Positions 1 through 64,000 of a stretch of 64,000 nt of DNA are shown here, piece after piece. A program made the position numbers and the translations under genes. The DNA is from Monocercomonoides exilis PA203 (taxonomy: Eukaryota; Protista; Preaxostyla): positions 992,001 to 1,056,000 of the forward strand of contig LSRY02000030.1 in the NCBI GenBank assembly GCA_001643675.2, read 5' to 3'. The stretch's first letter is position 1. Every line of letters starts with the position of its first letter. The notes beneath the pieces were generated by a model. The model was given only the letters and a program-made list of their open reading frames with translations, made no database searches and had not been told where the DNA came from.

Positions 1-3000
1 TCTTGTTGAATTGGATGATTGTGGTATTTTTATTTTGAGTGGAATATCTCCATTTTGTTTGACTGGAGGTTGTGGGCTGTTCACCAACATTTCTCTCAGT
101 TCATCTTCAACTGGGTTTTTGAAGACATTTCCCTCTCTCTTCTCTTCAAAAGCACAAGAAGGAGAGATTTCTCAGAAATTTCATGTTTCTGTTTGTTCAT
201 CACATTTTTCATCTTTTCGTGTCTCATCAACCACCTTTCTTTCATCGCCTTCCATTTCACAAATGTCACTTTCTCATCTGACATTTTTCAACATTTCAAC
301 AGCATCTTCAGATTGCCCATTTCCAACCACAATGTCAACACAAACCACATGTTTTATGAACTGCTGCTCATTTTCATCAGTTTGTGATGCATATGATGGA
401 GGAATTGTCCCTTCTCTCAACAACCCCTTGACTTCTTTGACAGTCTCAAACACCTCATTCGTTGGGTGCAGCCGGACAAGAAATGTGAAATGTGAAGGAA
501 CTGCAGATGGAAAGTTGACTCCTGCGAGACAAAACTCAACGGATAATGGAGCCAATTCATTCACTTGGTGCGAATGGAACGGATCGAAGACAACAGGAAA
601 CAAAGATGATTTTTCTGATGATGCTTCAAATGGTGGAGCAATTCGCATGTATAGTCTCAATTCTGGGGAACTTTCGGTTTCACATTGTTCATTCAACGAT
701 TGTTACGCTTATTTTGCCGGGGGAGGGACAATGTGCCATGGAATCAAATCAGTTGAAATCGAAGACAGCATATTCAATTCGTGTGCTGTTCAAAGCAACT
801 CTGGAGGAGGGATATTCATTTATTCAATTTCATCATGTGCAAGGATCAGTGGATGTGAATTTCTGAATTGCACAGCAATGCTTGATGGAGGAGGAATTCA
901 TCTCAATAATTTTCAGGTTTCGGGAACAGGATGTATTGGAGATGAAAGTGGAGGAGGGGAGAGCGCGTGTGTGTTTAACTTAAACTTCACTTCATGTTCG
1001 CTTTCGAGAATCGAGGGCGGAGGCATGTATTGCAGAACAGTTCCAATAGATTTCAAAATAAGGAGTGTTCAATTATTATATTGTTATTCATTGTCTTCCG
1101 GAGGAGGGTTTTGGATTAATCCGAATAGAGATAATGCGCCAAATGATACATTTTATTGTTATTTTTTATTTTTCCACGAATGCAAATGCAGAGATGAGAG
1201 CACTCCATATGGTCACGACGTGATGTTTTATGATCAAAATAATCTCTATTTGTCCCAAAATAATCCATTCAAAGAATGCTTCACAACGAATGCAGATGGC
1301 AAGAGAGTGCGATACGGATATGATTTATCGAATTCGGGGAATTGGAAATTTCAGCACATGGAAAAGAAGAATTGGCTGAAAGATAAAACGTTATATGTCT
1401 CAGTGAGTGGGAATGATGCATCTCCGCTTTGTGGGGCAGATATAACGCATCCATGCCTAACAGTGAAGAAGGCTTTTGAGATGTGCGAAATGCTATTGAG
1501 CTTATCAGTCACACTGATGGAAGGGAATCATCAAAGCGAGTCAACAACAATTGATATTGGAGAAAAGAAGATTTCAGTCATTGGGACAAGTAAAGAGAAG
1601 AGTGCAATTGGAACAAGAGCACTTTTATCAACTGAACCGCTGTTCAGTGTGACGACGGGTAACCTTGGTTTATTGCACATGAAGGTTGATTGTAACTCAA
1701 ATGAAAGTCCTTCTCTAAATGCGGTTGTGGTGTCTGACGGGAGTGGGTCACTCTCATTGGAAGATGTTTTGATTACCACGAGCAAAACAGGAGACTATGT
1801 GATATCATCATCAGTGTTTGTGGTTCCGCTGTCGCAGCTGTTGATGACCGATGTGGAGATCAAAGATATGAATATTTCTCAATCATTGTTCTCCGAGACG
1901 GATCTTTCTTCTTCTTCTTCTTCTTCATTTTCTTCATCTTCCCTGTTATTGGCAGCCACTTCATCTGGAGAGAGCGCACTGGCGAACATGAAAGTGAAGA
2001 ATGTGAGGTTGATAGAAGGAGATGGGGTGGTTGTGGCAAAGAGTGTGAAGGAAGGGGAGACATTTGTTGTTCAGAATGTGACAATCGAGGATTGTGAGTG
2101 CGAGAATGGGAGTGGTGGAGGAATCAAGGTTGAGTTGGAAACAGATACGAGCAAGCTTCGGGTTGAAAGAACAACAACAATCAAGAGATGCACAAGTGGG
2201 AAATATGGAGGAGGGATGATGCTGCAAATGGCTGACAACTCATTTGACTTCACGATTGTGTCAGTTGACTTTTCAGGGTGTTCTGCCTCATTGGGGGGGA
2301 ATTATGTGTTCGTGAATGGGAGCGATTCAGCGAGCTGGGGAATAACAACAGAAAAGCTGAATGTCCAACATGACGATTCAAAATACAATGAGCTGGTGGG
2401 ATATGATCGGAGTGACACAACAATGGGGCTATTCCCGTTGAATGTGTATTTGGACAGATATCCAGATGCAGCACATGTGGGGAAGGGGAAGGATGGGCTG
2501 GGTGGATACGACTCGTGGTTCTGTGGGTTTGACTATTATCCGTGTGCCACCATCACCCATGCAGCGCAGGTGAGATATGCAGACACAAACAAGAAGATCG
2601 AATTGGATTCAGGATTTGAGCTTGCTGAAGAGGTTGGAATGACAGATGGCTGTGAATGGGAGATTTCATGTGCGAGAAAAGGGATGGAAGTTGGGGTGAA
2701 AGCACCAGAGATTTTTGAGTCATCTTGTCTGATTGAGGTGTTGAGCAAATGTTCAGTGAGAAACATCAAGTTCTGTATTCCATCTGCTCTATCTGGTGCA
2801 ACATCATCATCTCTGATCGCATCCAACTCTACGCTCCTCACACTCACTGACTGTTCTGTTGTTTGTTCATCAGAGAATCCCATTAGATATTGTTTTGTGA
2901 ATATGATTGGGGGAAAAGTGAAAGCGGAGGGATTGGTGATCACAGAGACATTGAGATTTGGAGAACATTCACTGGTTGAGTTTGGTGAAGGGGTGGAATC

Positions 3001-6000
3001 AGTTGTGTTTTGGGGGTGTGAGGCGAGCAACATTGAGAAGAGAAATGGAGATGGAGGATGGGTGAGTGGAGTGGTTGGGGCAGAGAGAGATGAGGGGAAG
3101 AATGGGATAATTGTGATTGAGTCGTGTGTTGTGAAGGGATGCAGGTGTGTTGGTGGAAGAGGAGGAGGGATGAGTGTTGTTGTGAAGGGGGAAGGGAGTG
3201 TTGTTGTGAATAGGAGTTGTGTGATTGATGGGTGTGAGGCGAAGGGTTCAGGGGAGAGTTCAGGTGGGAGAAGTGAAGGGAGAGGGGGAGGGATGATGAT
3301 TGTGATGGAGAGTAGGGATGGTTCAATGAAAATGGAGTCGGAAAGAGAGGGTTTGTTTGTGTTTGGAGAGAATAACAAAGCTCAATATGGGAAGGATGTG
3401 TTTGTTGAATGTGGTGGAGGAGTGTTGTTGGAGTGGAAAGTGAACAGGAGTTCATTTTCATTTTTTGATTATGGTGTGATTCCAACAGATGTTGTGAAGT
3501 TGTGTGGGAGTGAGGATGGGAGAGAAGGGGAAGTGATTCCGCTGTTTGTGTATTTGTGTTCAATCGGGACAAAGCTGAGAGTTGATGGGAGAGGAGAGAG
3601 GGCGCTGGATCAGAGCCATTGTGGGTTTGAGGAGTTTGGGTGTTTGACGATTGACTATTGTGTTGGGAAGAGAGTGAGCATCAATGTGAATGAAATCGAA
3701 GTTGCCTCAGAAACATGGATAAAGAATGAGATGAAAGTGGCATCGTTTGAGTTGAGTCTTTCTGGGAAAGAAGAAGGGATGAGGGTGGTTGTGAGGGATG
3801 AAGGATCGATAAATCAAAACAACCTTATTGAGTGCACAAAATCATTTGAGATGAGACATTTGTCATTTGTGTTGAATGAAGAAATGAATGGGAAGAGAAG
3901 TGCATTTATCCACTCCTCATCATCAACCATCACAATGATCAGCTGTTCAGTCACATTTGGAAATGATGAAATGATTGGATACAATGTGATTTGTATTGAG
4001 GGAGGAGGGCTGGTTGTGAATGGGTTTGTGATGGAAGGGGGAGTGAGAATGAGTGGGAAACCGCCAATTGTTGCTTCGAATGGAGTTGAATTGGAGATGA
4101 ATAACAGTCGAATGAGTGGAGTGGAAGTTGTTGGTGGAATTGGAGGAGGAGGAGGATGTTTGAATGTGGAGATTTGTGTGAATGGGATTGTGAATATTGA
4201 AGAAAGCAATTTTTCATCAGTGTGTTCAGGAGTGAGTGGGATGAAAGGGGGAGGGATGAAGATATCAGTGGGGAAGGGAGGGAGGTTGGAAATGAAAAAT
4301 GTGAAATATTCAGGGTGTGAAGTGCCAAGAGAGGATGTTGGGGATGGAGGGAGAGGAATGGGAGGAGGGATGTTTGTGAAGCTGGCAGATGAGATGGGAA
4401 CATTTGTTATGGAAGGAATGATATTTGTTGGGTGCAATGCGTGGAAAGGGAAGAATGTGTTTGTGTCAGGATGGGATCTGAGAGAGATTGTGAACGAGGA
4501 GCACCTGAAATGGGAGATAAAGGATGAGGAGTTGGGATCGTTGGATGAGTTGTGTGGATGGGAGAGGAAGACGACAGGGGAGGAGGGATATGTGATTCCA
4601 CTGGTTGTGTATTTGTGGAGGAACTGGAGTGGGGATGGGTATGTTTCTCGAGAGAAAGGAGGAGACTTCAGTGGGTGCGGGTATTCCGAGGCGCCATGCT
4701 CATCGATTGACCACTTGATATCACTTCGATGTCCAACACTTGGAGAAGGAGAAACACATATTGCCATTGTGGGATCAGGGCTGCTGAGCCATTCCATATC
4801 ATTTTCATCTTCATCTTCATTTTCATTTTCTTCATCATCAATATCAGAGTCACCAAAAGTGGTAATTGAAGGAACAAAGAAAGGGACAGGGGTGATGATC
4901 AGTGATGAAGATGAGAATGATTTGTCCGATGGTTCAATGATATCATCGAATGTGAGTCTGTCATTTGTGAATGTGTCATTCACCAAGCCAGCCATCACAA
5001 CCCATCATTCAGTGTTGATTGAATCCTCTGGAGCAAACACATTATTGTCAGTTTCAGATTGTTCATTTGGCCCAGGGAGGGGAGTGGAAGAAAGTTTTGG
5101 ATATTGTGTGATGAGAGTGAATGGGGGGAGTGTATTTATTGAAAAGTGTTCGTTGAGTTTGATTTCAGAGTTGAAAGGGTTGATTGCGTTCAGCCCAAGT
5201 GCAGGTGAGGTGACACTTCAGAATGTGAACATTTCATTTGCCGATGTGACAGAAAGAAGTCTGATTTCGATGATAGATGAGGATAACAAAATGAATGGAG
5301 AAAAGAAGGTGTTTTCAAATGGGAACGGACCAGTTCTGAGGGTTGTTGGGTGTTCATTTGCGAACATCACAAACGAAGGGATTGGAGCGAGTGTTGTTGA
5401 TGTGGGATCATTTGAGCATGGAATGGAGTGTGTGATTGATGAGTGTTCTATGTCGAGTTGCAAGAGTGGCTTGAGTGTTGAAGGAGGGGGAATGAGAGTG
5501 GTGCTGAAGAGTGGGGAGTCAGTGTTGAAAGTGAATGGGAGCTCGTTTTCGATGTGCAAGTGCTCGAGTGAGACAGGGTGTGGAGGAGGGCTGTTTATTG
5601 ATGGATCTGACCCACATGCGAATTATAGAAATGAGAGTCAGATTCCACCTCTGAATTTCAAGATTGTGAACATCCTGTTTGTGATGAATGAGGCACATGT
5701 GGGGAAAGACGTGTTTGTCAGATGCCACTCGATTGCTCACCAGATCAACGAAACACTGTTTGCGCTGAACTACAACCAGGAGTCACTGAACTCGAACAAC
5801 TCGATCTATGGGAGGGATGTTTTGAGCGAGGGAGATGTTGATCTGATTCCGCTGATCACATTCTATTATTCGGCACAGGTGTTTGTGAGTGGGAGAGGGA
5901 GTGACAACAGGCAGTGTGGGGCACAGAGCAATCCGTGTGCAAGCATCGACTGTGGGGTTGAGCACATTCAGGAAGGGGTGATGAATGCAATTCTGATTGA

Positions 6001-8731
6001 TGGGGAAGTGTTTGTGACGAAGGAATGTGTGATTGGAGATATGGTTGTGAATTCATTGAAAAAGACACAGGGGATTGTTCGATTGAACTCTAAGATTGAG
6101 ATATCAGGTGAGAAGGATTGTGTGATGGAGTTTGTGAATGAATGTTCAGTGGAGAGATGCTCATTCCAGCTTGAAGATGGATTTGAGTCAGCTCACAATT
6201 ATTTTATGAAAGTGAAGAACGGGTCAATGGAGATCCAAAAATGCGAGTTCTTCTCTTCTTCTGATGAACTGAAGTTGAACAGTTCAATTGTGAGTGTGGA
6301 AAGTGGAGAGCTGAAGATATCAGAAACAACATTCAGGGATATTCATTTAACAAAATCAATTCTTTCATTTTGTGAGGAATCGAATGTGACAATTGATGAA
6401 ACAAGAATATCAAATCTCAGATGTGAGGGAGATGTTGTGAGTGTTGGAGGGAAAGCGAAAGTGGAGATGAAAGAGATGAAAGTTGAGAATGTGACTCTGT
6501 TGTTGGAGGGGTGTGTGATTGGGATGGAAGATGCTGAGAAAGAGGTGAGTGTACTGAACAGCTCATTCGAAAAGTGCGAGAATTCAGTTGATAAGGGAAG
6601 CATGATGCAGATCAAAAATTCCAAGGATGTGAGGATTGTGAATTGTGTGTTTGATGGAGAAAAAGAAGATGAAATTGTCAATGAAGAAAACAATAGAAAA
6701 GAGGGATTGTGCAAATGGAATGGGTCATTGGTTGATGTTGAGAAGAGCAAAGTGGAGATGAGGGAAACAACAATCAGAAATAGCAAGGGAGGAGGGTTGT
6801 GGGTGAGTGGAGGGAGTGTGAAGATTGAAAATGGAAAGTTTGAGAACAACAACCCATCGATTGAGGGATATCCATCAGCCAGAAGGAATGTGATTTGTGA
6901 AGGGAATGGGGAGTTGAATGTTGTGAATGTGAAAGGGGGAGATGGACTGAAAGATAACTCATCATTGTGGATATTGGATGAGGGATGCGAATTGGGAGGG
7001 ATAGCAACTGAAAGAGGATCATCATTTTTCATCCCTGTTTTGGAAGAGGTGAAGAATATTTCTCAGCCAAATGGGAATGTGGAGTTGATGATTCTTGGAA
7101 AGCTGTTTCTGCCATGTGATTTGTCGGTGAAGATGAGCATGAAAAATGGGGATGAGGAGGAGATTGTGAGAAAAGGGATTGAAGAAGATGGGTTTGTGTC
7201 AGAGAATGAGATTCACTCAGTTATTTCATGTTCAGAATGGGAGAAAGTGAGAGAAGAGACAGAAGTGAGTGTGTGGATTGTGTTTGGGAAAGCTGATTCC
7301 CTCACATCAACAGATTCGGTTATTGTGAAGAACAGGAGTGAAACTGTTGGAAAAGGAGATGAAAGGATTGTTGAAGGAGGGAAAGAAGGGAAGTCTTATT
7401 GGCTGTTGATTATTATAATCATGGGAATAATCCTTTTGATTGTTCTGATTGTATCTGTCATTGTGACTATTCGTTGGAGAAAGGCAAAGAATGAGAATAA
7501 AGATCTGAGAGAGATTGTGAATGATACAGTGAGAAAGGATCCGAAGGCATTCGAGATGGTGACGATGGAGATGTCTCCAGAGGAGCAGTGGAGGAGAGCA
7601 GAGAAAGAGGCAGAGAAGAAGAATGATGAGAGGATAAAGAAAAGAATGTATGAGACGAATATGCAACATTCAGTGTCATCTGAGCATTTGCTGAGTGAGA
7701 GTGGATCGACTGAATATATCTTGGGAAAAGACTCAGACAAGATTCCTCAATGGGCATTGGAAAAGGTTGATGAGAAAGAGGAAGAGACAAGGAAAAGAAC
7801 ACCATCACCATCCATCTCATCCACTTCAACAACTGATTCAGATTCAACATTTGTTCGATCGGAGAGTCTGTATCCCACCACCTCATCGATGTCGAATCTG
7901 GTGGATGCTATGGCCTGTTCGTCTCCTCATGAGAAGCTAATTGTGGATCTGAGGGATTCATTGTTCATGTTGCTTCACGGGCTGAACAAGACAAAGGAGA
8001 TGGCAATAGGCACTCTGCAGGAGAGGGAGCAGACAGCTGCCCAGATCCTGTTCTGGGTGGCTAATCTTGCTCTCCACTCGTTTGACGAAATGGAAAACCC
8101 ACTTCAATCATTGTCCACTCTGAGTCCTCACATTGTATTGTTTTCAGAACACATGGTGATCTGCATTGTGATGCACTCTGATCTCCTTTCTTCTGATGAT
8201 TCAGACTCATCATCCATCTCTTCATCAACAGTTGTAACATCTGCCAGTGATGATGATGATGATTCTCTGCCCTCATCTGCATTTGATGATGAGAGCCTTT
8301 TCAAAAAAGAGTGCCTGAGATGGAAGGCGCCAGAGCTGCTGATGAACAAGAAGATGGGGGCAACAAAGGAGTCGGTTGCATTTTCGATCGGGATGATGCT
8401 GTGGGAGTGTTTGACATTGGAAATTCCGTTTGGAGAGTATGAAGGGGAGGTGGCAGGGCAGAAGATTGTGAATGGAGAAAGACCAGAGCTGGAGAAGGTG
8501 ATTGGAAGCAAGTTGGATGAAGCAATGAACATATGCGTTTCTCAGGATGCAGTATCCAGGCCTTCGCTGACAGTTCTGAAGCGAATGTTGTTTGAGCACT
8601 TTCCGGCAGGTACGATGATGATGACAATGTCAGATGCTGTTGATTATGCGTGCTACTCAGAAAGGTGTGAAAGCAATGGGCGGTGCATTAAGAGCAGCTC
8701 TATCCGTGGTGAGGGCGAAAGAACGAGTTGA
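1..8731 (+). CDS. Giant single-pass receptor: Cys/Gly-rich beta-helix (Pmp/pectin-lyase-like) ectodomain, TM helix, C-terminal TKL/TK-like pseudokinase; 5' end lies upstream of the window
   Basis: 2906-aa intronless ORF with the frame open to base 2. The paralog at 57369 has about 160 more N-terminal residues. Repeated FxxC...GG[AG]I motifs; five modules starting V..G.D...CG....PC.[TS][IV] (GC in one); TM YWLLIIIIMGIILLIVLIVSVIVTI at about 7397-7471; kinase C-lobe motifs RWKAPE, FSIGMMLWEC and RPSL at about 8320-8570, with no recognisable HRD or DFG. Confidence 0.85.
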   Translation, partial: LVELDDCGIFILSGISPFCLTGGCGLFTNISLSSSSTGFLKTFPSLFSSKAQEGEISQKFHVSVCSSHFSSFRVSSTTFLSSPSISQMSLSHLTFFNISTASSDCPFPTTMSTQTTCFMNCCSFSSVCDAYDGGIVPSLNNPLTSLTVSNTSFVGCSRTRNVKCEGTADGKLTPARQNSTDNGANSFTWCEWNGSKTTGNKDDFSDDASNGGAIRMYSLNSGELSVSHCSFNDCYAYFAGGGTMCHGIKSVEIEDSIFNSCAVQSNSGGGIFIYSISSCARISGCEFLNCTAMLDGGGIHLNNFQVSGTGCIGDESGGGESACVFNLNFTSCSLSRIEGGGMYCRTVPIDFKIRSVQLLYCYSLSSGGGFWINPNRDNAPNDTFYCYFLFFHECKCRDESTPYGHDVMFYDQNNLYLSQNNPFKECFTTNADGKRVRYGYDLSNSGNWKFQHMEKKNWLKDKTLYVSVSGNDASPLCGADITHPCLTVKKAFEMCEMLLSLSVTLMEGNHQSESTTIDIGEKKISVIGTSKEKSAIGTRALLSTEPLFSVTTGNLGLLHMKVDCNSNESPSLNAVVVSDGSGSLSLEDVLITTSKTGDYVISSSVFVVPLSQLLMTDVEIKDMNISQSLFSETDLSSSSSSSFSSSSLLLAATSSGESALANMKVKNVRLIEGDGVVVAKSVKEGETFVVQNVTIEDCECENGSGGGIKVELETDTSKLRVERTTTIKRCTSGKYGGGMMLQMADNSFDFTIVSVDFSGCSASLGGNYVFVNGSDSASWGITTEKLNVQHDDSKYNELVGYDRSDTTMGLFPLNVYLDRYPDAAHVGKGKDGLGGYDSWFCGFDYYPCATITHAAQVRYADTNKKIELDSGFELAEEVGMTDGCEWEISCARKGMEVGVKAPEIFESSCLIEVLSKCSVRNIKFCIPSALSGATSSSLIASNSTLLTLTDCSVVCSSENPIRYCFVNMIGGKVKAEGLVITETLRFGEHSLVEFGEGVESVVFWGCEASNIEKRNGDGGWVSGVVGAERDEGKNGIIVIESCVVKGCRCVGGRGGGMSVVVKGEGSVVVNRSCVIDGCEAKGSGESSGGRSEGRGGGMMIVMESRDGSMKMESEREGLFVFGENNKAQYGKDVFVECGGGVLLEWKVNRSSFSFFDYGVIPTDVVKLCGSEDGREGEVIPLFVYLCSIGTKLRVDGRGERALDQSHCGFEEFGCLTIDYCVGKRVSINVNEIEVASETWIKNEMKVASFELSLSGKEEGMRVVVRDEGSINQNNLIECTKSFEMRHLSFVLNEEMNGKRSAFIHSSSSTITMISCSVTFGNDEMIGYNVICIEGGGLVVNGFVMEGGVRMSGKPPIVASNGVELEMNNSRMSGVEVVGGIGGGGGCLNVEICVNGIVNIEESNFSSVCSGVSGMKGGGMKISVGKGGRLEMKNVKYSGCEVPREDVGDGGRGMGGGMFVKLADEMGTFVMEGMIFVGCNAWKGKNVFVSGWDLREIVNEEHLKWEIKDEELGSLDELCGWERKTTGEEGYVIPLVVYLWRNWSGDGYVSREKGGDFSGCGYSEAPCSSIDHLISLRCPTLGEGETHIAIVGSGLLSHSISFSSSSSFSFSSSSISESPKVVIEGTKKGTGVMISDEDENDLSDGSMISSNVSLSFVNVSFTKPAITTHHSVLIESSGANTLLSVSDCSFGPGRGVEESFGYCVMRVNGGSVFIEKCSLSLISELKGLIAFSPSAGEVTLQNVNISFADVTERSLISMIDEDNKMNGEKKVFSNGNGPVLRVVGCSFANITNEGIGASVVDVGSFEHGMECVIDECSMSSCKSGLSVEGGGMRVVLKSGESVLKVNGSSFSMCKCSSETGCGGGLFIDGSDPHANYRNESQIPPLNFKIVNILFVMNEAHVGKDVFVRCHSIAHQINETLFALNYNQESLNSNNSIYGRDVLSEGDVDLIPLITFYYSAQVFVSGRGSDNRQCGAQSNPCASIDCGVEHIQEGVMNAILIDGEVFVTKECVIGDMVVNSLKKTQGIVRLNSKIEISGEKDCVMEFVNECSVERCSFQLEDGFESAHNYFMKVKNGSMEIQKCEFFSSSDELKLNSSIVSVESGELKISETTFRDIHLTKSILSFCEESNVTIDETRISNLRCEGDVVSVGGKAKVEMKEMKVENVTLLLEGCVIGMEDAEKEVSVLNSSFEKCENSVDKGSMMQIKNSKDVRIVNCVFDGEKEDEIVNEENNRKEGLCKWNGSLVDVEKSKVEMRETTIRNSKGGGLWVSGGSVKIENGKFENNNPSIEGYPSARRNVICEGNGELNVVNVKGGDGLKDNSSLWILDEGCELGGIATERGSSFFIPVLEEVKNISQPNGNVELMILGKLFLPCDLSVKMSMKNGDEEEIVRKGIEEDGFVSENEIHSVISCSEWEKVREETEVSVWIVFGKADSLTSTDSVIVKNRSETVGKGDERIVEGGKEGKSYWLLIIIIMGIILLIVLIVSVIVTIRWRKAKNENKDLREIVNDTVRKDPKAFEMVTMEMSPEEQWRRAEKEAEKKNDERIKKRMYETNMQHSVSSEHLLSESGSTEYILGKDSDKIPQWALEKVDEKEEETRKRTPSPSISSTSTTDSDSTFVRSESLYPTTSSMSNLVDAMACSSPHEKLIVDLRDSLFMLLHGLNKTKEMAIGTLQEREQTAAQILFWVANLALHSFDEMENPLQSLSTLSPHIVLFSEHMVICIVMHSDLLSSDDSDSSSISSSTVVTSASDDDDDSLPSSAFDDESLFKKECLRWKAPELLMNKKMGATKESVAFSIGMMLWECLTLEIPFGEYEGEVAGQKIVNGERPELEKVIGSKLDEAMNICVSQDAVSRPSLTVLKRMLFEHFPAGTMMMTMSDAVDYACYSERCESNGRCIKSSSIRGEGERTS

Positions 8732-45700: not shown

Positions 45701-47152
45701 TTGAAAAAAACTTGTTTGAATTCTTTTATCTTCCATTTGTATTTTTTTTTTTTTTTACAGGCAACCGAATCCGAGCTGTTTTCGAAGATTGTGAGTCAAA
45801 AGCGCGATCTGTGGCCGAACTTCTATTTTGTGCAGTTTGTAGGGAAGAAGTTCAAAGAGCATTATCTGCACAACAGCGAGTGTGTGTACAGGCAGCCAGC
45901 GAATGTGCGGTTGGATGTGTTCACCCGAACGATGAAGGAGAAGTTCAAAGAGATGAAAGTGGAGAGCGGGGCGAAGAAAGTGCCAGAAGGGGCAGAGGAA
46001 GACGAAGAGTGTGGATTGGTTCTGATCACAGGAGGGCTTGTTGCAGTGAGAGAGGAAGATTATTTGAGGGAAAAGAGGTTTGCCAGCAGATACGACAATA
46101 TCCTGTCTCTCTCTCAGCGAAGAAGAGCAGAAGGAAACGAGATGGAAACAGAAGGGGAGAAAAGAGGGAAGAGCAAAAACAAGAGAAGTGCGAGTGCAAT
46201 TGAAGAGATAGAGAAAGGGGAAAGGGGAAGAACAGGTGATGTGGCAGCCAATTTGGATGAAGAATTGGAAGAGACCGATGCAGAAGATGAGCTGATGGAG
46301 GAGGAAGACGATGGCGAAGACAGCAGCGTTGCCGACGATGCAGCAGAAGCAAACGGAGGCCGTGCGACGAGAAGAAGAGACGTGGACATTGAGCTTGTGG
46401 ACGACTACACAAACAGCTCTCTCTTTGCAAACCACAGAAACTCGTTGAATGCTCATTCTTCTTCTCTTTCTTCTTCTCTTTCTTCTTCTTCTTCCTCTTA
46501 TTCATCCAATTTCTCTTCCCAGTTGCAGCCAGCAGAGTCTGTTCCGAAGTACATCCGCGATGCTGCCTCCCATTTCAAGCAGCACATCTTCCTCAGCACG
46601 AAGACCGTGGAACTTGGCGGCAAGCAGCGCGGCTTTGAGCTCCGGACGCAGCAGAAGATGAGCACATATTTGTTTACCAGCCGCACTTTTCCGTCGCTTT
46701 CAAGAAGGCTCCATGTGGAGCGGAAGGAGGTTCTCCTCTTCTCGCCCATCCAGTCGGCCACGCTGACGGTGATGGAGAAGACGAGGGAGCTGAAAGAGGC
46801 GATAGAAGTGTACTCGGCGCCAGATGCAGCTAAGACAGCGCCTGTGAGCAAGCTGACGATGCTGCTGCAAGGGGTGATCGATCCAGGCGTGGGAGGAGGG
46901 CTGAGGAAGTACTTGGACAACTTCTGCGACAGAGAGTATCTGATGAAGGATCCGCTGGTGAGGCAGATGCAGCTGGACGACTTGTTTGAAGAGATGCGCA
47001 TTCAGTGCAGAATGTCGCAGATGGCAATGGAAGTCCATGCGCGTGTGTGTTCGGGGCCGGCGAGGAATCTGCATGAGCTGCTTGAAGGTAAACTGGCTTT
47101 GCTGATTGAGTCGGTGGAGGAGAAGGCGATGATGTTTGAGTCGCGAAGGTGA
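36709..47152 (+). CDS. DOCK-family Rho/Rac GEF (DHR-1 C2 and DHR-2), DOCK-A/B-like; start not resolved
   Basis: DHR-1 motif YRSCVFYHNNTPLWEE...HFLFTFRH (~38580-38695). DHR-2 motifs LLEMHTKLGNYEECG, GYWERG, FYFVQFVGKKF, TFPSLSRR, SPIQSA and LLQGVIDPGVGGG. Phase-0 introns at 37141-37229 and 45579-45760. Confidence 0.88.
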
Positions 47153-49900: not shown

Positions 49901-50289
49901 GTCTTCCTCGGTAAATGCTGTTTTTTGTATTTGCAAAAACATAAACATTAAAAAACCACTCTTTAAAAAAAAAAGAAAAGAAAAAAACTCTTTTCACACT
50001 TTGTTTTCTGATAATATTTGAATGGTTCATCAAGTGATCTTCAAAAAATAGAATCTCTTTTCAATCAACCAACAGAGCTCATTGTTTCGTTGTTTGTTTG
50101 TAAGAGAATCAAAGTTAATAAAATTACTCAAACTATGTTTTTCAAAATTGTGTTGTTTTTTCAACAATATTAGCGAAAAATAATTGCAATGATTCAATTT
50201 CGTATATGTTTATATTTATTTGTTTTCAAGTCTGTTGTAAATGACAATTAATCCCTTAACAATTGTTTATCATCTTTGAAGAAAGGGGC

Positions 50290-55699: not shown

Positions 55700-57000
55700 T
55701 CATAAATTCAAATATCGCTTTATTCAAGATAATAAAAGAATACTTTTTATCGATTCGTAAGAACTTTATTTTTTTTAAAAGAAATCTACAAAAAAACATA
55801 GATAATGATAATGAGTAAGTTGATGTTTGAAGTATCGAAAGTTCCCCCTTTCCCTCTTCTTCTTCATCTTCCTTGCTGCTCAATCAAAATTAAATGACTT
55901 GAATCACCAGTAATCCATAAAATAAACGAACATTAATTTTGCAATAAAATAGAAGAAGAAGCATGCAAAAAATATAAGGTATTTCCCGTTCTGTTGATGA
56001 AATTGAGGAAGAATGTAGAATTAAGTGGCTGATGATGTTAAAGGCATTTTTTGAAGAAATGGTTAAGAAAGAAGAAGAAACACTTCCACAGCAAAAATTT
56101 CTTCCTTTTTCTTTTTCCTTCAAAATACTGTTAAATCAACCAATAAAACGATCGATTTACATTTATAACTTTCTTTCCTCTTTCAGGAGGTGTTGATGAA
56201 TGTTGGCTTATTAAATCTGAAATCAATAAATCCGCTTTGGTGGCTGCTCTCCTTCTTTGAGAAAACATCATCATCTTTGCAATTTGCCTTTCTCCTCTTC
56301 AGATTCTTCCCAAAAAATACCTTCCAATCTGGTTCAGCCCCATTGACTGCTTTTCCTCCACAACATTCCCCTCTTTCCTCTTCCTTTTCTTTGTATTTCC
56401 TCGTGCTTTTCTTTTTTTCTGCCTTTCTATCTTTTCCCCAAAATGGCATCTCCAAAATGAAATCTGCCAGGAACAGAGAAAATGAATTCCATTTCCTTGT
56501 GGCATAGGAACACGGGAGATGCAATCAGATGTGAAATTTCCAATCCAAAACAAAATTGAAAAATAACAAAATTAGATTTTTTATGAAAATATTCAAATAA
56601 AACAAACATTCAAAAGATATTCGTTGCCAATCGCATTCTTTTCTTAAGTGCCTTTGTCCTTTTCAAAGCAATCCATTTCAGTAATTTCAGCCTTTGTCAA
56701 CTTTCCTTTTTTTCTCAAATTGTATCATTTTCTGCCCTGTTTGCAAAAGAAATCAAATAAATGAATAAAACACCCAATGAAATATTTCATATAAATCAAT
56801 TCCACACCTTCCATCTCATTGGACGAGAATGTTCCAATTCAGCCATCCAACGCTTCAGCAGATAACAATCAAGAAATATCAATTCCAAAATGCCTCTGAT
56901 AACTTCAAACGCAAAAATCACACAAATACCAGAAAACAAAATATAAAAGATATTTTCAAAAAACTTTCACTGCACAAACCTCATCTGTTCCTTGGATAAA
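55700..57000 (-). pseudogene. Possible degenerate gene remnant
   Basis: Short K/E-rich minus-strand frames (e.g. 56183-56524) broken by stops. No domain recognised. Confidence 0.25.
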
Positions 57001-57368
57001 TGAATTCCAAAAAGAAAATCGCTTCTCCAACTTTCCCTTCACGTGAAAAATGAAAAATTCGCTCAGAGACTGAAAAACAAATGTAATGACAAGCAGATTG
57101 AGTTTTAATAGTTTTTCTGTCTGTATCTATGAAAATATCAAAACATAAACATTTTCAGTCAATCATTTTGTATTATTCAAATGATCAAAGGAAAATGAAT
57201 ATTTCATTCATTCAAAATATTTCAAAATGAATAAAATAATTTATCTTGTTTTGCAATTGAATAGGAAAAGTTTTCAATTTTTTCATTAATTTTTATTATT
57301 GCACCCATTCTAAAAAAGAAGAAATCTGGAAAAAAAGAAAAGAGTCTTTTTTGTGTGGATAAGTTCCA

Positions 57369-60300
57369 ATGACATCAGGAATATTTTGTTTTGTTTGCAT
57401 AATATGTATGCAATGCCTGCGCAATGGTGCCACAAATGATGAAGCAAATCTGGTGGAGAATTCAATGATTGAAAGAAATACAGATTATTTGGGAAACTCT
57501 TTGTTTGATCTCCTTCCAAATGATAAGAATGGAGATAAAAACAAGTTAGAAATGATTGTTGAAGGGAATGAAGGTGGAATGGAAGAAAATGAAGAAAAAG
57601 AAAAATCAACAAAGAAATATACGAATATGAAAAAAGAAAGAGACAGCCGAATTAGGAGAGAGAATTCAATCAAGACTTTGAATAATGAACATTTCCATTA
57701 TGAAGGAGGAATGAGGGGAATTGAAAGAAATTTTGAAGAAAGTGAGGTTGAAGGAAGTTTAGTTCTTATTAATACTTCAGTGAAGCTCAAATCATTGGGG
57801 CTGATTCAACATGATGAGACAAATATTGTTAAAGTTGGGGATGGAAGTTCTGTTGAATTGGATGATTGTGGTATTTTTATTTTGAGTGAAATGTCTCCAT
57901 TTTGCCTGACTGGAGGTTGTGGGGTTTTCAAGAATATTTCACTCAGTTCATCTTCAACTGTGTTTTTGGAGACATTTCCATCTCTCTTCTCTTCAAAAGT
58001 TTCGAAAGAGAAGTTTTCAGAAAAATGCTTTGTTTCTGTTTGTTCATCTCATTTCTCCTCTTTTTGTGTCTCATCAGCCCCATTCCTATCATCCACTTCT
58101 ATTCTCCTTATATCCCTTTCTCAACTGACATTTTTCAACATGTCAACAGCAAATGATGCATGTTCATCTCCAACCATAACATCAACCCAAACCACATGTT
58201 TTGTGTGCAGTTGCTCCTTTTCATCAGTCTGTGATGCATATGATGGCGGGATTGTTCCCTCCCTCAATTACCCCTTGGCTTCATTGTCTGCCTCAAACAC
58301 CTCATTTGTTGGGTGTTGTCGAACAAGGAATGTTGAATGCACTGGAACTACAGATGGAAAGTTGACTCCAGGGAGACAGAATACAACGGATAATGGAGCA
58401 AATATATTCACTTGGTGTGAATGGAACGGATCGAAGGCTGCTGGAAACAAAGAAGATTACACAGATGATGCTTCAAATGGTGGAGCAATTTGCATGTTCA
58501 ATAAGGGAAATGGAGAACTTTCTATATCTCATTGCGCATTCAATGGATGCACGGCATATGCACATGGAGGCGGAGTCATGTGCCATAACATTAAATCTGT
58601 CACAGTAATAAACAATTCTTTCAATTCTTGCATTGCTCAAAGAAAATATGGAGGAGGTATTTATGCCGTATTAATTTCAACATGTGTTCGGATAAGTGGT
58701 TGCAAATTCCAGGATTGCAAAGCTTATAGCCATGGAGGAGGAATTTATCTCAATAATTTTCAGGTTTCTGGATCAGGATGTATTGTGGAAGAAAAGTGGA
58801 TGGAAGAGAATGAATATATGTTTGATTGCAATTTTGTATCATGTTCAGTTGTAAATATTGTTGGAGGGGGATTGTATTGCGTTAATATTCCTACCAAACA
58901 GTCTGTGATGAGGAGCATTCAATTCATTTCATGTTCTGCACGACAAGAGGCAGGAGGATTGTGTTTGAATCCAAGTCGAGAAACATTACCAAAAAATGGA
59001 AGTTATTGTTTATTTTTATTATTTCACGGATGCACATGCGTTGATGCAACTTATCCACTTGGGCATGATGCGGAATTTGCAGATTATTTCAGTCTTTATT
59101 TGGATACAGGAAATCCGTTCTTCGAGTGTTTCACCACAAACACTGATAACAAGAGAATATGCTTTGCAAGATATCTTTCAGGTTCTTGGGTGTATGATCA
59201 AACAATAAAAAAGGATTGGCTGAAAGACAAAACACAATATGTCTCAGTGAATGGGAAAGATGAATATGAGCTGTGTGGGGCAAATACAACATATCCATGC
59301 CTAACAGTGAAGAAGGCGTTTGAGATGTGTGAAATACTATTGAGCCTTTCAGTCACTTTGATGGAAGGGAATCACACAAGCGAGGCAACAACGATTGCGA
59401 TTGGTGAAAAGAAGGTTTCAGTCATTGGGAAAGGCAAAGAGAAGAGTTCGATTGAAACAAAATCTCTTTCATCGACTGAAGCGCTGTTCAGTGTGTCAAC
59501 AGGTCACCTTGATTTATTGCACATGAAGATTGATTGTAACTCAAATGCAAATCCTTCTTCGCCGAGTGTGGTTGTGGCGTCTGATGGGAGTGGGTCACTC
59601 TCATTGGAGGATGTTGTGATCACAACGAGTAATATTGGAGAATATGTGATATCATCATCAGTGTTTGTGGTGCCGCTGTTACAGCTGTCGATGGTTGGTG
59701 TGGAGATCAAGAATATGAATGTCTCAAAATCATTGTTCTCTGAACCTGTTTTTTCTTCTTCTTCTTCTTCCTCATCTGCCCTGTTATTGGCAGCCACTTC
59801 ATCTGGAGAGAGCACGCTGGCGAACTTAACAGTGAGGAATGTGAAGTTGACAGAAGGAGATGGGGTGGTTGTGGCAAAGAGTGTGGCAGAAGGGGATACA
59901 TTTGCTGTTCAGAATGTGACAGTCGAGGATTGTGAGTGCGAGAATGGCAGTGGAGGAGGAATCAAGGTTGATTTATTATCACCTTCAAGCAAGCTTCATG
60001 TTGAATTATCAACAACAATGAACAGATGCAAAAGTGTCAAATATGGAGGAGGGATGATGCTGTATCTGGCTGACAACTCGATTGACTTCTCGATTGTGTC
60101 AGTTGACTTTTCAGGGTGTTCTGCTTCAGTGGGAGGGAATTATGTGTTTGTGAATGGGAGCAATTCGGTGAGTTGGGGAATAACAACAGAAAAGCTGAAT
60201 GTCCAACATGACGATTCAAAATACAATGAGCTGGCGGGATATGATCGGAGTGATTCAACAATGGGGCTGTTCCCACTGAATGTGTTTTTGGATTCATATC

Positions 60301-63300
60301 CAGATGCAGTTCATGTGGGGAAGATGAAGGATGGGCTGGGTGGATACGACTCGTGGTTCTGTGGATTTGACTATTATCCGTGTGCCACCATCACCCATGC
60401 AGCGCAGGTGAGATATGCAGACACAAACAAGAAGATCGAATTGGATTCGGGATATGAGCTTGCTGAGGCAGTTGGAATGACAGATGGCCATGAATGGGAG
60501 ATTTCATGTGCGACAAAAGGGATGGAAGTTGGGGTGAAAGCACCAGAGAATTTTGAGTCACCTTGTCTGATTGAGGTGTTGAGCAAGTGTTCAATGAGAA
60601 ACATCAAATTCTGTATTCCATCAACTCTATCTGGAGCAACATCATCATCTCTGATCACATCCAACTCCACACTCCTCACACTCACTGATTGTTCAGTTGT
60701 TTGTTCATCAGAGAATTCCATTGGATATTGTTTTGTGAATGTGGTTGGGGGAAAAGTGAAAGTGGAGGGATTGGTGATCACAGAGACCTTGAGATTTGGA
60801 GAACATTCAGTGATTGAGTTTGGTGAAGGGGTGGAATCAGTTGTGTTTTGTGGATGTGAGGTGAACAATATTGAGAAGAGAAGTGGAGATGGAGGATGGG
60901 TGAGTGGAGTGGTTGGGGCAGAGAGAGATGAGGGGAAGAATGGGATAATTGTGATTGAAACGTGTGTTGTGAAGGGGTGCAGGTGTGTTGGTGGAAGAGG
61001 AGGAGGGATGAGTGTTGTTGTGAAGGGGGAAGGGAGTGTTGTTGTGAATGGGAGTTGTGTGATTGATGGGTGTGAGGCAAAGGGTTCAGGGGAGAGTTCA
61101 GAAGGGAGGAGAGAAGGGAGAGGGGGAGGGAGAGGGGGAGGGATGATGATTGTGATGGAGAGCAGGGATGGTTCAATGAAAATGGAATCGGGAAGAGAGG
61201 GTTTGTTTGTGTTTGGAGAGGATAACAAAGCTCAATATGGGAAGGATGTGTTTGTTGAGTGTGTTGGGGGAGTGTTGTTGGAGTGGAAAGTGAATGGGAG
61301 TTCATTTTCATTTTTTGATTTTGGTGTGATTCCAACAGATGTGTTGAAGTTGTGTGGGAGTGAGGATGGGAGAGAAGGGGAAGTGATTCCGCTGTTTGTG
61401 TATTTGTGTTCAATCGGAACAAAGTTGAGAGTTGATGGGGGAGGAGAGAGAGCAATGGATCAGAGCCATTGTGGGTTTGAGGAGTTTGGGTGTTTGACGA
61501 TTGACTATTGTGTTGGGAAGAGAGCGAGCAGCAATGTGAATGAAATTGAAGTTATCTCAGAATCATGGATAAAGAATGAGATGAAAGTAGTTTCATTTGA
61601 GGTGAGTGTTTCAGGGAAAGAAGAGGGGATGAGGGTGATTGTGAGAGATGAAGGATCGATAAATCAAAACAACCTTATTGAGTGCACAAAATCATTTGAG
61701 ATGAGATATTTGTCATTTGTGCTGAATGATGAAATGAATGGGAAGAGAAGTGGATTTATCCACTCTTCATCATCATCTTCGACCATCACAATGACCAGCT
61801 GTTCAGTCTCATTTGTCAATGATGAAATGATTGGATACAATGTGATATGTGTTGAGGGAGGAGGGTTGGTTGTGAATGGGTTTGTGATGGAAGGGGGAGT
61901 GAGAATGAATGGGAAGTCACCTATTGTTGTTTCGAATGGAGTTGAATTGGAGATGAATGACAGTCGAATGAGTGGAGTGGAAGTTGTTAGCGGAATTGGA
62001 GGAGGAGGAGGATGTTTGAATGTGGAGATGGGTGTGAATGGGGTTGTGAACATTGAAGAATGCAATTTGTCATCAGTGTGTTCAGGGGGGAGTGGGATGA
62101 AAGGGGGAGGGATGAAGATATCAGTGAGGAAGGGAGGGAGTTTGGAAATGAAGAATGTGAAATATTCAGGGTGTGAAGTGCCAAGAGAGGATGTTGAGGA
62201 AGGAGGGAGAGGAATGGGAGGAGGGATGTTTGTGAAGCTGGCAGATGAGATGGGAACATTTGTGATGGAAGGAATGGAATTTGAGAGATGCAATGCCTGG
62301 AAAGGGAAGAACATGTTTGTGTCAGGATGGGATCTGAGAGAGATTGTGAATGAGGAGCACCTGAAATGGGAGATGAGTTTGGATGAGTTGGGATCATTGG
62401 ATGAGCTGTGTGGATGGGAGAGGAAGACAACAGGAGAGGAGGGATATGTGATTCCGCTGGTTGTGTATTTGTGGAGGAACTGGAGTGGGGATGGGTTTGT
62501 TTCAGTTGAGAAAGGAGGAGACTTCAGTGGGTGTGGGTATTCAGAAGCACCATGCTCATCGATTGACCACTTGATATCACTTCGATATCCAACACTTGGA
62601 GGAGGGGAAACTCATATTGCCATTGTGGGGTCAGGGTTGCTGAGCCATTCCATATCATTTTCATCATCAATTTCAGATTCACCAAAAGTGGTGATTGAAG
62701 GGACAAAGAAAGGGACAGGAGTGACGATCAGTGATGAAGATGAGAATGATTTGTCTGATGATGGTTCAATGATCTCCTCGAATGTGAGTCTGTCATTTGT
62801 GAATGTGTCATTCACCAAGCCAGCCATCACAACCCATCATTCAGTGTTGATTGAATCATCTGGAGCAAACACATTATTGTCAGTTTCAGATTGTTCATTT
62901 GGCCCAGGGAGAGGGGTGACAGAAAGTTTTGGATATTGTGTGATGAGGGTGGATGGGGGGAGTGTTGTGATTGAGGGGTGTTCGTTGAGTTTGATTTCAG
63001 AGTTGAAAGGGTTAATTGCCTTCAGTCCAAATGCACATGAGGTGACTATTCAGAATGTGAACATCTCATTTGCCGATGTGACAGAAAGAAGCCTGATTTC
63101 GATGATGGAAGAGGAAAACCAGATGAATGGAGAAAAGAAGGTGTTTTCAAATGGGAACAAACCAGTTTTGAGGGTTGTTGGATGTTCATTTGCGAACATC
63201 ACAAATGAAGGGATTGGAGTGAGTGTTGTTGATGTGGGGTCATTTGAGGATGGAGTGGAGTGTGTGATGGATGAGTGTTCGATGTCAAATTGCAAGAGTG

Positions 63301-64000
63301 GTTTGAGCATCGAAGGAGGGGGGATGAAAGTGGTGCTGAAGAGTGGGGAGTCAGTGTTGAAAGTGAATGGCAGCTCGTTTTCGATTTGCAAGTGCTCGAG
63401 TGAGACAGGGTGTGGAGGAGGGCTGTTTATTGATGGATCTGACCCACATGCGAATTATGGAAATGAGAGTCAGATTCCACCTCTGAATTTCAAGATTGTG
63501 AACATCCTGTTTGTGATGAATGAGGCACATGTGGGGAAAGACGTGTTTGTCAGATGCCACTCGATTGCTTACCAGATCAATGAAACACTGTTTGCACTGA
63601 ACTACAACCAGGAGTCACTGAACTCGAACAACTCGATCTGTGGGAGGGATGTTTTGAGCGAGGGAGATGTTGATCTGATTCCGCTGATCACATTCTATTA
63701 TTCGGCACAGGTGTTTGTGAGTGGGAGAGGAAGTGATGGGAGGGGGTGTGGGGCACAGAGCAACCCTTGTTCCAGTATCAACTGTGGGGTTGAGCACATC
63801 CAGGAAGGGGTGATGAATGCGATTCTGATTGATGGGGAAGGGTTTGTGAGGAAGGAGTGTGTGATTGGGGATCTGGTTGTGAATTCATTGAAAAAGACAC
63901 AGGGGATTGTTCGGTTGAATTCCAAGATTGAGATATCAGGTGAGAAGGATTGTGTGATGGAGTTTGTGAACGAATGTTCAGTGGAGAGATGCTCATTCCA
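57369..64000 (+). CDS. Second giant beta-helix receptor paralog (3' end beyond the window)
   Basis: ATG 57369 follows an in-frame TAA and gives the signal-like MTSGIFCFVCIICMQCL. Position 57858 onward aligns colinearly with position 11 onward of the first gene. The ORF track lists no terminated ORF in this frame, consistent with it staying open to 64000. Confidence 0.85.
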   Translation, partial: MTSGIFCFVCIICMQCLRNGATNDEANLVENSMIERNTDYLGNSLFDLLPNDKNGDKNKLEMIVEGNEGGMEENEEKEKSTKKYTNMKKERDSRIRRENSIKTLNNEHFHYEGGMRGIERNFEESEVEGSLVLINTSVKLKSLGLIQHDETNIVKVGDGSSVELDDCGIFILSEMSPFCLTGGCGVFKNISLSSSSTVFLETFPSLFSSKVSKEKFSEKCFVSVCSSHFSSFCVSSAPFLSSTSILLISLSQLTFFNMSTANDACSSPTITSTQTTCFVCSCSFSSVCDAYDGGIVPSLNYPLASLSASNTSFVGCCRTRNVECTGTTDGKLTPGRQNTTDNGANIFTWCEWNGSKAAGNKEDYTDDASNGGAICMFNKGNGELSISHCAFNGCTAYAHGGGVMCHNIKSVTVINNSFNSCIAQRKYGGGIYAVLISTCVRISGCKFQDCKAYSHGGGIYLNNFQVSGSGCIVEEKWMEENEYMFDCNFVSCSVVNIVGGGLYCVNIPTKQSVMRSIQFISCSARQEAGGLCLNPSRETLPKNGSYCLFLLFHGCTCVDATYPLGHDAEFADYFSLYLDTGNPFFECFTTNTDNKRICFARYLSGSWVYDQTIKKDWLKDKTQYVSVNGKDEYELCGANTTYPCLTVKKAFEMCEILLSLSVTLMEGNHTSEATTIAIGEKKVSVIGKGKEKSSIETKSLSSTEALFSVSTGHLDLLHMKIDCNSNANPSSPSVVVASDGSGSLSLEDVVITTSNIGEYVISSSVFVVPLLQLSMVGVEIKNMNVSKSLFSEPVFSSSSSSSSALLLAATSSGESTLANLTVRNVKLTEGDGVVVAKSVAEGDTFAVQNVTVEDCECENGSGGGIKVDLLSPSSKLHVELSTTMNRCKSVKYGGGMMLYLADNSIDFSIVSVDFSGCSASVGGNYVFVNGSNSVSWGITTEKLNVQHDDSKYNELAGYDRSDSTMGLFPLNVFLDSYPDAVHVGKMKDGLGGYDSWFCGFDYYPCATITHAAQVRYADTNKKIELDSGYELAEAVGMTDGHEWEISCATKGMEVGVKAPENFESPCLIEVLSKCSMRNIKFCIPSTLSGATSSSLITSNSTLLTLTDCSVVCSSENSIGYCFVNVVGGKVKVEGLVITETLRFGEHSVIEFGEGVESVVFCGCEVNNIEKRSGDGGWVSGVVGAERDEGKNGIIVIETCVVKGCRCVGGRGGGMSVVVKGEGSVVVNGSCVIDGCEAKGSGESSEGRREGRGGGRGGGMMIVMESRDGSMKMESGREGLFVFGEDNKAQYGKDVFVECVGGVLLEWKVNGSSFSFFDFGVIPTDVLKLCGSEDGREGEVIPLFVYLCSIGTKLRVDGGGERAMDQSHCGFEEFGCLTIDYCVGKRASSNVNEIEVISESWIKNEMKVVSFEVSVSGKEEGMRVIVRDEGSINQNNLIECTKSFEMRYLSFVLNDEMNGKRSGFIHSSSSSSTITMTSCSVSFVNDEMIGYNVICVEGGGLVVNGFVMEGGVRMNGKSPIVVSNGVELEMNDSRMSGVEVVSGIGGGGGCLNVEMGVNGVVNIEECNLSSVCSGGSGMKGGGMKISVRKGGSLEMKNVKYSGCEVPREDVEEGGRGMGGGMFVKLADEMGTFVMEGMEFERCNAWKGKNMFVSGWDLREIVNEEHLKWEMSLDELGSLDELCGWERKTTGEEGYVIPLVVYLWRNWSGDGFVSVEKGGDFSGCGYSEAPCSSIDHLISLRYPTLGGGETHIAIVGSGLLSHSISFSSSISDSPKVVIEGTKKGTGVTISDEDENDLSDDGSMISSNVSLSFVNVSFTKPAITTHHSVLIESSGANTLLSVSDCSFGPGRGVTESFGYCVMRVDGGSVVIEGCSLSLISELKGLIAFSPNAHEVTIQNVNISFADVTERSLISMMEEENQMNGEKKVFSNGNKPVLRVVGCSFANITNEGIGVSVVDVGSFEDGVECVMDECSMSNCKSGLSIEGGGMKVVLKSGESVLKVNGSSFSICKCSSETGCGGGLFIDGSDPHANYGNESQIPPLNFKIVNILFVMNEAHVGKDVFVRCHSIAYQINETLFALNYNQESLNSNNSICGRDVLSEGDVDLIPLITFYYSAQVFVSGRGSDGRGCGAQSNPCSSINCGVEHIQEGVMNAILIDGEGFVRKECVIGDLVVNSLKKTQGIVRLNSKIEISGEKDCVMEFVNECSVERCSF

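Follow-up and report, generated by a model that had tools for sequence, protein, structure and literature searches.

An old divergent head block on a young stalk in giant putative beta-helix receptor genes of Monocercomonoides exilis: a probable recognition ridge

Introduction

In the silent-cassette systems of Anaplasma MSP2, Borrelia VlsE and Trypanosoma VSG, the general design is an archive of silent donor copies that are copied into an expressed gene. In the vls system, the identity of the silent cassettes with the expression site is about 90% (PMC11499132). As to protein fold, the repeats of the chlamydial Pmp proteins are coils of a predicted beta-helix (PMC11166332, PMC10715098), and the Pmp-like proteins of trichomonads are membrane proteins of metamonads too (PMC6701047). 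Here we analyze a stretch of 64,000 nucleotides from Monocercomonoides exilis (contig C26:992001-1056000, hereafter the window), in which two giant paralogous genes, called copy 1 and copy 2, encode putative beta-helix receptors whose heads carry a strongly divergent block on stalks that are much alike.

The family to which these genes belong has been noticed before, from its other end. In the kinase passages of two papers (PMC6759080, PMC8767320), the largest gene family of M. exilis is presented as 'protein tyrosine kinases', with 332 predicted kinases, 320 of them tyrosine-kinase-like, overlapping 'unclassified repeats'. These are the same genes as the family of copies 1 and 2, which are recognized by their MONOS locus tags. 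What is left of the kinase, however, is a remnant of the C-lobe, and in copy 1 the tail has neither HRD nor DFG. The 'tyrosine kinase' passages and the term counts of both papers hold no mention of a beta-helix ectodomain, of a mosaic of head and stalk or of head arrays, and our literature search found no paper on the ectodomain, the head arrays or the mosaic evolution of this family in M. exilis.

A first-pass annotation of the window had proposed that the two genes carry a hypervariable N-terminal beta-helix cassette on a near-identical stalk. We followed up this proposal in the whole genome (82.3 Mb, 101 contigs); homologues of head and stalk were found in M. exilis only, and every protein match bears a MONOS locus tag. 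Our analysis reveals that the block is old and not fast-evolving, and we consider it probable that it presents a recognition ridge that diversified long ago and whose diversity selection has maintained, in mosaic genes with a homogenized stalk.

Results

The divergent block is old rather than fast-evolving

Copy 1 occupies positions 1..8731 of the plus strand (reading frame within the window 11..8731), with an uninterrupted open frame of 3071 codons and a TGA stop at 8729-8731. Copy 2 lies at 57369..64000, also on the plus strand, in an open frame that extends from 57363 past the window end and has 3076 codons in the genome. To judge from their translations, both are type-I membrane proteins of about 3070 codons, with a signal-like N-terminus, an ectodomain of beta-helix type, a single membrane span and the remnant of a kinase C-lobe.

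Between the two genes, the block at residues 378-620 (650-1378) shows 50% amino acid identity, with a synonymous divergence (dS) of 1.52 and a nonsynonymous divergence (dN) of 0.42, whereas the stalk shows 86-93% identity and dS 0.14-0.18. By sliding Nei-Gojobori windows, amino acid identity is 38-57% across about 640 to 1370, 68-83% in the flanks on both sides and 85-98% deeper into the stalk. A two-breakpoint likelihood scan places the breaks at nucleotides 650 and 1367, with a gain in log likelihood (lnL) of 101 and mismatch proportions of 0.18, 0.39 and 0.12 to the left, in the middle and to the right. The block of copy 1 is accordingly taken as 650..1367 (plus strand, residues 378-617), with the WLKDKT junction motif at 1373..1390 on its 3' edge; the block of copy 2 is at 58497..59216 and ends at its own WLKDKT motif (nucleotide 59217). 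In other gene pairs the 3' break falls at 1337-1514, within about 150 nucleotides of this motif. The composition changes as well: GC content is 0.39 and 0.37 in the blocks of copies 1 and 2 against 0.44-0.45 in the stalk, GC content at third codon positions (GC3) is 0.35 and 0.27 against 0.45, and G-skew is 0.2 against 0.5.

The first-pass annotation had thus located the block almost exactly and described it well, as to the divergence of the two copies (roughly 50-60% identity), the lower GC content and the residues before the GGG turns, since all the differences listed there are present in the alignment. Its details need some correction. The first 91 residues differ strongly, at 38 positions by our recount and not 34; the near-identity of DNA downstream holds for 5520-5890 against 63350-63720 (97-99%), though the stalk as a whole is 90-95% identical. 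The cassette is distinct, but it is an island and not the N-terminal end, because the part upstream (11-649) is more similar than the block, at 76% amino acid identity, and the true N-terminus lies 478 nucleotides outside the window.

How old the block is becomes clear from five genes of one subfamily (copy 1, copy 2, L026, L035 and L036), which make ten pairs. In all ten, dS is 1.06-2.03 in the block against 0.14-0.32 in the stalk, and dN is 0.28-0.42 against 0.03-0.11; the cytoplasmic tail is intermediate (dS 0.6-0.8). The ratio dN/dS (omega) of the block is 0.2-0.35 across these pairs, no higher than that of the stalk; over 30 heads, omega under the one-ratio model M0 is 0.28. None of the 561 pairs of 34 heads has omega above 1, and the highest ratio of nonsynonymous to synonymous differences per site (pN/pS) is 0.55. 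The block is therefore old rather than fast, because its synonymous divergence is saturated and its omega does not exceed that of the stalk. Moreover, the recent duplicates P0057 and P0058, which have retained their own heads, are about 0.95 similar in the head and 0.90 in the stalk, and family-wide the block is no more divergent than the stalk is between subfamilies. The word 'hypervariable', if it means fast evolution in situ, has to be abandoned.

Variable positions keep one register on a predicted beta-helix

An AlphaFold model of copy 1 residues 166-870, built from an alignment of 65 sequences, predicts a beta-strand solenoid, with a predicted local distance difference test score (pLDDT) above 90 over model residues 180-300, which make up most of the regular block. 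The top Foldseek matches in the PDB are all right-handed beta-helices (7dmk, E 8e-6; 5gkd; 4oj5; 7koh) and include PL6 lyases, tailspikes and Ag43; as the model comprises several domains, their TM-scores reach only about 0.2, and the matches serve for the fold class only. On this model the head block is a right-handed parallel beta-helix, in agreement with what had been proposed from the letters. Among Pfam profiles, Beta_helix is above its cut-off in the copy 1 stalk (28.3 bits) and below it in the block (E 0.037), and no family is significant for the copy 1 head. Chlam_PMP (PF02415) has no match in the copy 1 head at E up to 5, and matches one of 65 heads at E 0.047. The rungs read F-N-D-C, F-N-S-C, F-L-N-C and the like, followed 7-9 residues on by GGG and T, I, M or F. 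In motif and spacing they resemble Pmp repeats, a likeness that is not a statistical one.

The block of copy 1 consists of six rungs of 28-29 residues, with one insert of 15 residues, and then a less regular cap. Its turns start at residues 373 (GGA) and 402, 430, 458, 501 and 529 (GGG), that is, at nucleotides 632, 719, 803, 887, 1016 and 1100. Over 184 heads, the entropy is 2.4, 2.2 and 2.8 bits at offsets -3, -2 and -1 from GGG, and 2.4, 2.5 and 2.0 bits at +4, +6 and +7; at GGG it falls to about 0, and at other offsets it does not exceed 1.7 bits. The hot offsets differ from the rest with a Mann-Whitney p of 3.5e-12, for offsets picked after inspection. According to DSSP on the model, -3 to -1 form the loop before the turn and the next strand begins at +3, in which the conserved hydrophobic residues at +3 and +5 alternate with the variable ones at +4 and +6. 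Since equal offsets stack in successive coils, the variable residues would form a ridge at one corner of the helix; the single variable face that had been suggested is thus supported, as argued from the common register around the GGG of six successive rungs.

Site models place a small class of sites with omega above 1 in the block alone

Site models were fitted with our own codon-model likelihood, in which frequencies were F3x4, the tree was fixed and the overall scale was left free, and M8 was compared with M8a by twice the difference in lnL throughout. For 30 heads on one tree (M7 -12936.10, M8a -12927.55, M8 -12917.84), this statistic is 19.4, and the selected class takes 5.7% of sites with an omega (omega_s) of 1.74. 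With a separate tree for each third of the block (-11921.46, -11903.00 and -11887.74 in the same order), it rises to 30.5, with 7.8% of sites and omega_s 1.79; for nine full-length genes only (-5014.66, -5007.82, -5003.51), it is 8.6, with 10% and 1.94. Neither flank used as control is significant, the N-flank giving 0.8 (-5995.23, -5993.42, -5993.02) and the C-flank 2.5 (-3383.98, -3377.70, -3376.44). The model M2a was set aside, its fit being far worse than that of the beta models. Flagged sites stand before GGG (residues 500, 526-528 and, with P 0.78, 457) and at outward positions after it (462 and 507), and some are in irregular loops (475, 562, 574, 604 and 607).

There is thus moderate evidence for diversifying selection, in the form of a class with omega above 1 that is limited to the block and clustered at the GGG corner. 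The claim of the first-pass annotation survives in this restricted sense, for a few sites of the block and not of its flanks; it does not hold for the block as a whole, with its mean omega of 0.28 and no pair above 1. The same numbers bring up another explanation, namely an ordinary birth-and-death family under relaxed constraint, in which the block is the least constrained exposed part of an old domain and has changed by neutral drift and recombination. The low mean omega, the ceiling of 0.55 in pN/pS, an omega_s of only 1.7-1.9, the flagged sites in irregular loops and the heavy recombination inside the block all speak for it. Against it, no such class is seen in the flanks, whose recombination background is the same, the signal survives both separate trees per third and restriction to full-length genes, and the hot sites of the well-aligned rungs keep strict register. 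We regard relaxed constraint as possible though not likely, and it is with the same reserve that the omega class could be put down to recombination, saturation and loop alignment.

Head and stalk have separate genealogies

The stalk of copy 1 belongs to a group of about 30 genes, mostly on contigs C26 and C21, which are 88-91% identical over a probe of 500 residues. Its block has a different kinship: more than 150 genomic relatives are closer to it than copy 2 is, the best, at 68% protein identity, being in an array of short frames on C80, and the block of copy 2 likewise has closer relatives in the genome than copy 1. Among 46 full-length proteins, pairs range from 0.6 to 0.95 in stalk identity, yet throughout this range their blocks remain at 0.55-0.57. 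On the fine identity profile, pairs with close stalks and pairs with mid-distance stalks are indistinguishable from about residue 220 to about residue 860, and this decoupled span is roughly that of the array copies described below (residues 220-750). In approximately unbiased (AU) tests, the stalk tree is rejected when tried on the block (delta lnL 389, p 7e-53), as is the block tree when tried on the stalk (p 1e-71). In the nucleotide tree of the block, genes of the subfamily are scattered among array copies with 89-100% bootstrap support.

The block is itself a mosaic. Own trees for its three thirds improve lnL by about 1000, and the nearest neighbor switches from window to window along both blocks. 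In a search of the whole genome for a recent donor, the best DNA identity over the block is 77% for copy 1 and 74% for copy 2, the latter searched only whole, as one query of 848 nucleotides. When the copy 1 block was taken as thirds of 240 nucleotides, the best matches were 78-84%, with a different partner for each; at no more than 84%, recent transfer of about 100 nucleotides or more is excluded there. Shifting neighbors together with no close head in the genome indicate that the mosaic is old and has no recent donor. Cassette shuffling, as proposed earlier, is therefore to be divided: old recombination among heads is supported, and a recent cassette transfer into either copy is not.

What was made alike seems to be the other part of the gene. 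When copy 1 is compared with L035 and L036, the stalk is young, the tail older and the 3' flanks unrelated, which points to homogenization of the stalk and not to replacement of the head. That even the closest heads reach only 77% and 74% DNA identity likewise makes the stalk the likelier target of conversion. The stalk GC3 of 0.45 against 0.27-0.35 in the block would fit biased gene conversion. Between copies 1 and 2, the leader (dS 0.18) and the 5' flank (56998..57366, plus strand, in copy 2; 82.5% identity) are as young as the stalk. The proposal of a stalk homogenized by conversion or recent duplication is thus upheld by a young stalk and by the genealogies that the AU tests separate.

Another kind of chimera is seen in the full-length pair P0039 and P0050 (MONOS_10694, MONOS_4024), 0.9-1.0 identical over residues 300-1740 and then 0.3-0.5 to the end, with a breakpoint in the middle of the stalk.

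Truncated heads are arrayed in the genome

The genome holds more than 1200 head copies, when full-length genes, of which there are hundreds, and arrays of truncated heads are counted together. The truncated heads form arrays on C80, C53 and C71, many of them as inverted pairs, and palindrome arms carry identical blocks. Their short open frames cover residues 220-750 of copy 1 approximately, that is, the block with about 150 residues of conserved flank on each side. These copies remain open and under purifying selection (omega 0.2-0.35).

Two side observations concern the arrays. In the inverted pair L018 and L019 (C53:270576-274304 and 280138-283866), blocks and C-flanks of the arms are identical and the N-flanks differ with dS 0.45, a difference that points to a patch replaced on one arm. 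In the block tree, the terminal branches of L026, L035, L036 and copies 1 and 2 are 2-9 times as long as the branches of the array sisters, whether measured by dS or by dN; omega is similar on the two sides of this relative-rate comparison, so selection-driven acceleration is not indicated. Homogenization among array copies is a possible cause, as is a higher mutation rate in the full-length genes.

Two readings give the arrays a role as donors. In the first, arrays and full-length genes would be a germline gene-conversion reservoir that is still generating combinations of ridge residues for a very large repertoire, for the recognition of prey, microbiota or host; this we hold to be rather unlikely. 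Copies 1 and 2 would then be old products, with stalks kept uniform by a second, separate conversion process, an addition that is doubtful to the same degree. In the second, programmed cassette switching (antigenic or phase variation) would draw on the truncated heads as a silent stock, from which copies pass into the full-length genes that are expressed, within the life of a culture or an infection. The abundance of heads, the inverted-pair arrays with conserved flanks, the purifying selection that keeps the frames open and the nesting of full-length blocks among array blocks suit such a system, and the arrays on C80, C53 and C71 do form the archive of truncated copies with conserved flanks that it would draw on. 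Near-identical donor tracts, however, were not found for copies 1 and 2, the closest heads anywhere having 77% and 74% DNA identity over the block and the thirds of copy 1 no more than 84%, with copy 2 searched only whole, and the full-length genes number hundreds instead of one or a few expression sites. Programmed switching is thus not supported for copies 1 and 2 by their sequences, and we consider it improbable in general. Targeted hypermutation of the head, by which a locally raised mutation rate would inflate dS and dN in situ, is hardly credible: it could account for dS and dN both being about tenfold higher in block than in stalk and for the long full-length branches, but highly supported tree incongruence means different ancestry and not rate alone, palindrome arms have identical blocks, and the heads of P0057 and P0058, being at least as similar as their stalks, argue against it.

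Gene architecture and neighboring genes

The protein of copy 1 is identical to the M. exilis database protein P0001. Its first methionine lies 478 nucleotides upstream of the window and is followed by a hydrophobic, signal-like start. After it comes a leader rich in Glu, Lys and Asn (residues 1-165; -478 to 10 relative to the window, or L001:374-861; 57369-57857 in copy 2), in which the two copies differ with dS 0.18 and dN 0.18, an omega of about 1. Between subfamilies the identity of the leader drops to 15-20%, so that no other part of the protein is less constrained, and the residues adjoining it have pLDDT below 50. On the plus strand of the window, the rest of copy 1 is divided into the upstream head part (11..649), with a low-confidence, probably disordered stretch and then conserved beta-helix rungs; the block; the conserved downstream head part (1391..2125), whose genealogy is uncoupled from the stalk up to about residue 860; the G-rich beta-helix stalk (2126..7393), with dS 0.14-0.3 among its paralogues; a single hydrophobic membrane span read directly from the translation (7400..7471); and the kinase C-lobe remnant (8306..8587), which matches Pfam PF07714 only at profile positions 165-257 of 258.

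In the copy 1 tail of 416 residues no HRD and no DFG string is present, APE alone being found, and on this sequence the tail would not make a complete active receptor protein kinase of the tyrosine-kinase-like (TKL) group. The cytoplasmic tail (7376-8728) is older than the stalk within the subfamily, with dS 0.6-0.8 against 0.14-0.2, and despite this high dS it has short stretches that are 85-88% identical family-wide.

Ordinary genes separate copies 1 and 2, all on the plus strand. There is a metacaspase, with a caspase domain (Peptidase_C14, E 1e-20), at 17881-20505, and a protein with two LysM domains (E 7e-43) at 50263-51264. Adjacent open frames at 37215-47152 show DOCK-C2 (E 5e-26) and DHR-2 lobe C (E 5e-9), and are probably one gene for a DOCK-type exchange factor, split by an intron or a frameshift. 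Extreme strand skews are seen at 42001-44000 (GC skew -0.65, AT skew -0.45).

Discussion

The reading that we regard as probable, of an old recognition ridge on a homogenized stalk, can be put as follows. Copies 1 and 2 would be two of about 30 members of one chromosomal subfamily, on C26 and C21, within the family of giant beta-helix receptors with pseudokinase tails. Their long stalk, and in this pair also the leader and the 5' flank, may have been made alike recently, by gene conversion within the subfamily or by recent duplication. The block of about 240 residues would instead be drawn from a family-wide pool of old head variants, which recombined among themselves in the past and now stand on a plateau of about 55% identity. 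Purifying selection presumably holds the scaffold, namely Cys, Phe, the segment like FxxN/C, GGG and the inward hydrophobic residues, and leaves about 15-25 residues free or driven to change, in the loop before each GGG and at outward positions of the strand after it. The shared register of the rungs would put these residues on one ridge, where selection would maintain diversity while conversion wipes out differences elsewhere. From topology, fold and pattern of variation, the ridge may be where ligands are contacted, and the family may be a repertoire, encoded in the germline, of receptors that differ in specificity; to judge from the fold, bacterial or host glycans, for instance, could be candidate ligands.

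Several points weigh against this reading. The site-model code is not a standard package, and it uses a fixed topology with proportional branch lengths on data that are saturated and recombining; such tests are known to be liberal under recombination, and it is for these reasons that we rate the result as moderate evidence. As omega_s is modest, relaxed constraint at the ridge, with omega about 1, is not firmly excluded. The codon analyses cover five subfamily genes and about 29 heads as DNA only, and the single ridge is a deduction from DSSP and from the register of the repeats. At the same time, the youth of the leader and the 5' flank in copies 1 and 2 would be explained just as well if the gene was duplicated recently and a head was then exchanged for that of a donor no longer in the genome.

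If the favored reading is right, each receptor of what was published as a kinase family combines an old, diversified and structurally coherent ridge, a recently homogenized stalk and a dead-kinase tail, which goes beyond the published kinase annotation. M. exilis was the first eukaryote in which mitochondria were shown to be absent, and several per cent of its genome belong to this family. The family would offer a testable model of how a protist, free-living or commensal, can assemble and keep a large set of receptors, and of how conversion can make one region of a gene uniform while selection keeps a different region diverse. For binding studies this reading names concrete residues, at offsets -3 to -1, +4 and +6 around each GGG turn. 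Should the less likely reservoir exist, an amitochondriate gut protist would have its own equivalent of the systems that generate repertoires, and one that differs from the antigenic variation of parasites.

Comparison with known systems

The M. exilis heads resemble the chlamydial Pmp and the trichomonad Pmp-like proteins in their FxxN-like segments before a GG[GA][ILVMF] turn, with one coil of a predicted beta-helix per repeat, and all of these are multi-copy surface families. The M. exilis receptors, however, have no autotransporter barrel, their C-terminus being a single membrane helix with a cytoplasmic kinase-remnant tail; they add a further beta-helix stalk of about 2000 residues; and their family has hundreds or thousands of copies, with separate head-only arrays besides.

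Anaplasma MSP2, Borrelia VlsE and Trypanosoma VSG, as far as the relevant passages of PMC11499132 and PMC2632889 go, resemble the M. exilis family in truncated variable copies with conserved flanks, in arrays and in a mosaic history. Unlike vls, M. exilis has a best head match of only 74-77% and hundreds of full-length genes, with no defined expression site and no ongoing transfer seen.

The third likeness is with the peptide-binding region of major histocompatibility complex (MHC) class I and II molecules and with plant clusters of nucleotide-binding leucine-rich repeat (NLR) and receptor-like kinase (RLK) genes. The variants of M. exilis are paralogues in one genome and not alleles, the fold is unrelated, and a ligand role would be ascribed to them by analogy. 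Nevertheless, the pattern is similar: the recognition segment has old lineages and a high dS, omega exceeds 1 at a few contact sites of a domain that is constrained overall, and the rest of the gene is homogenized by recombination or conversion.

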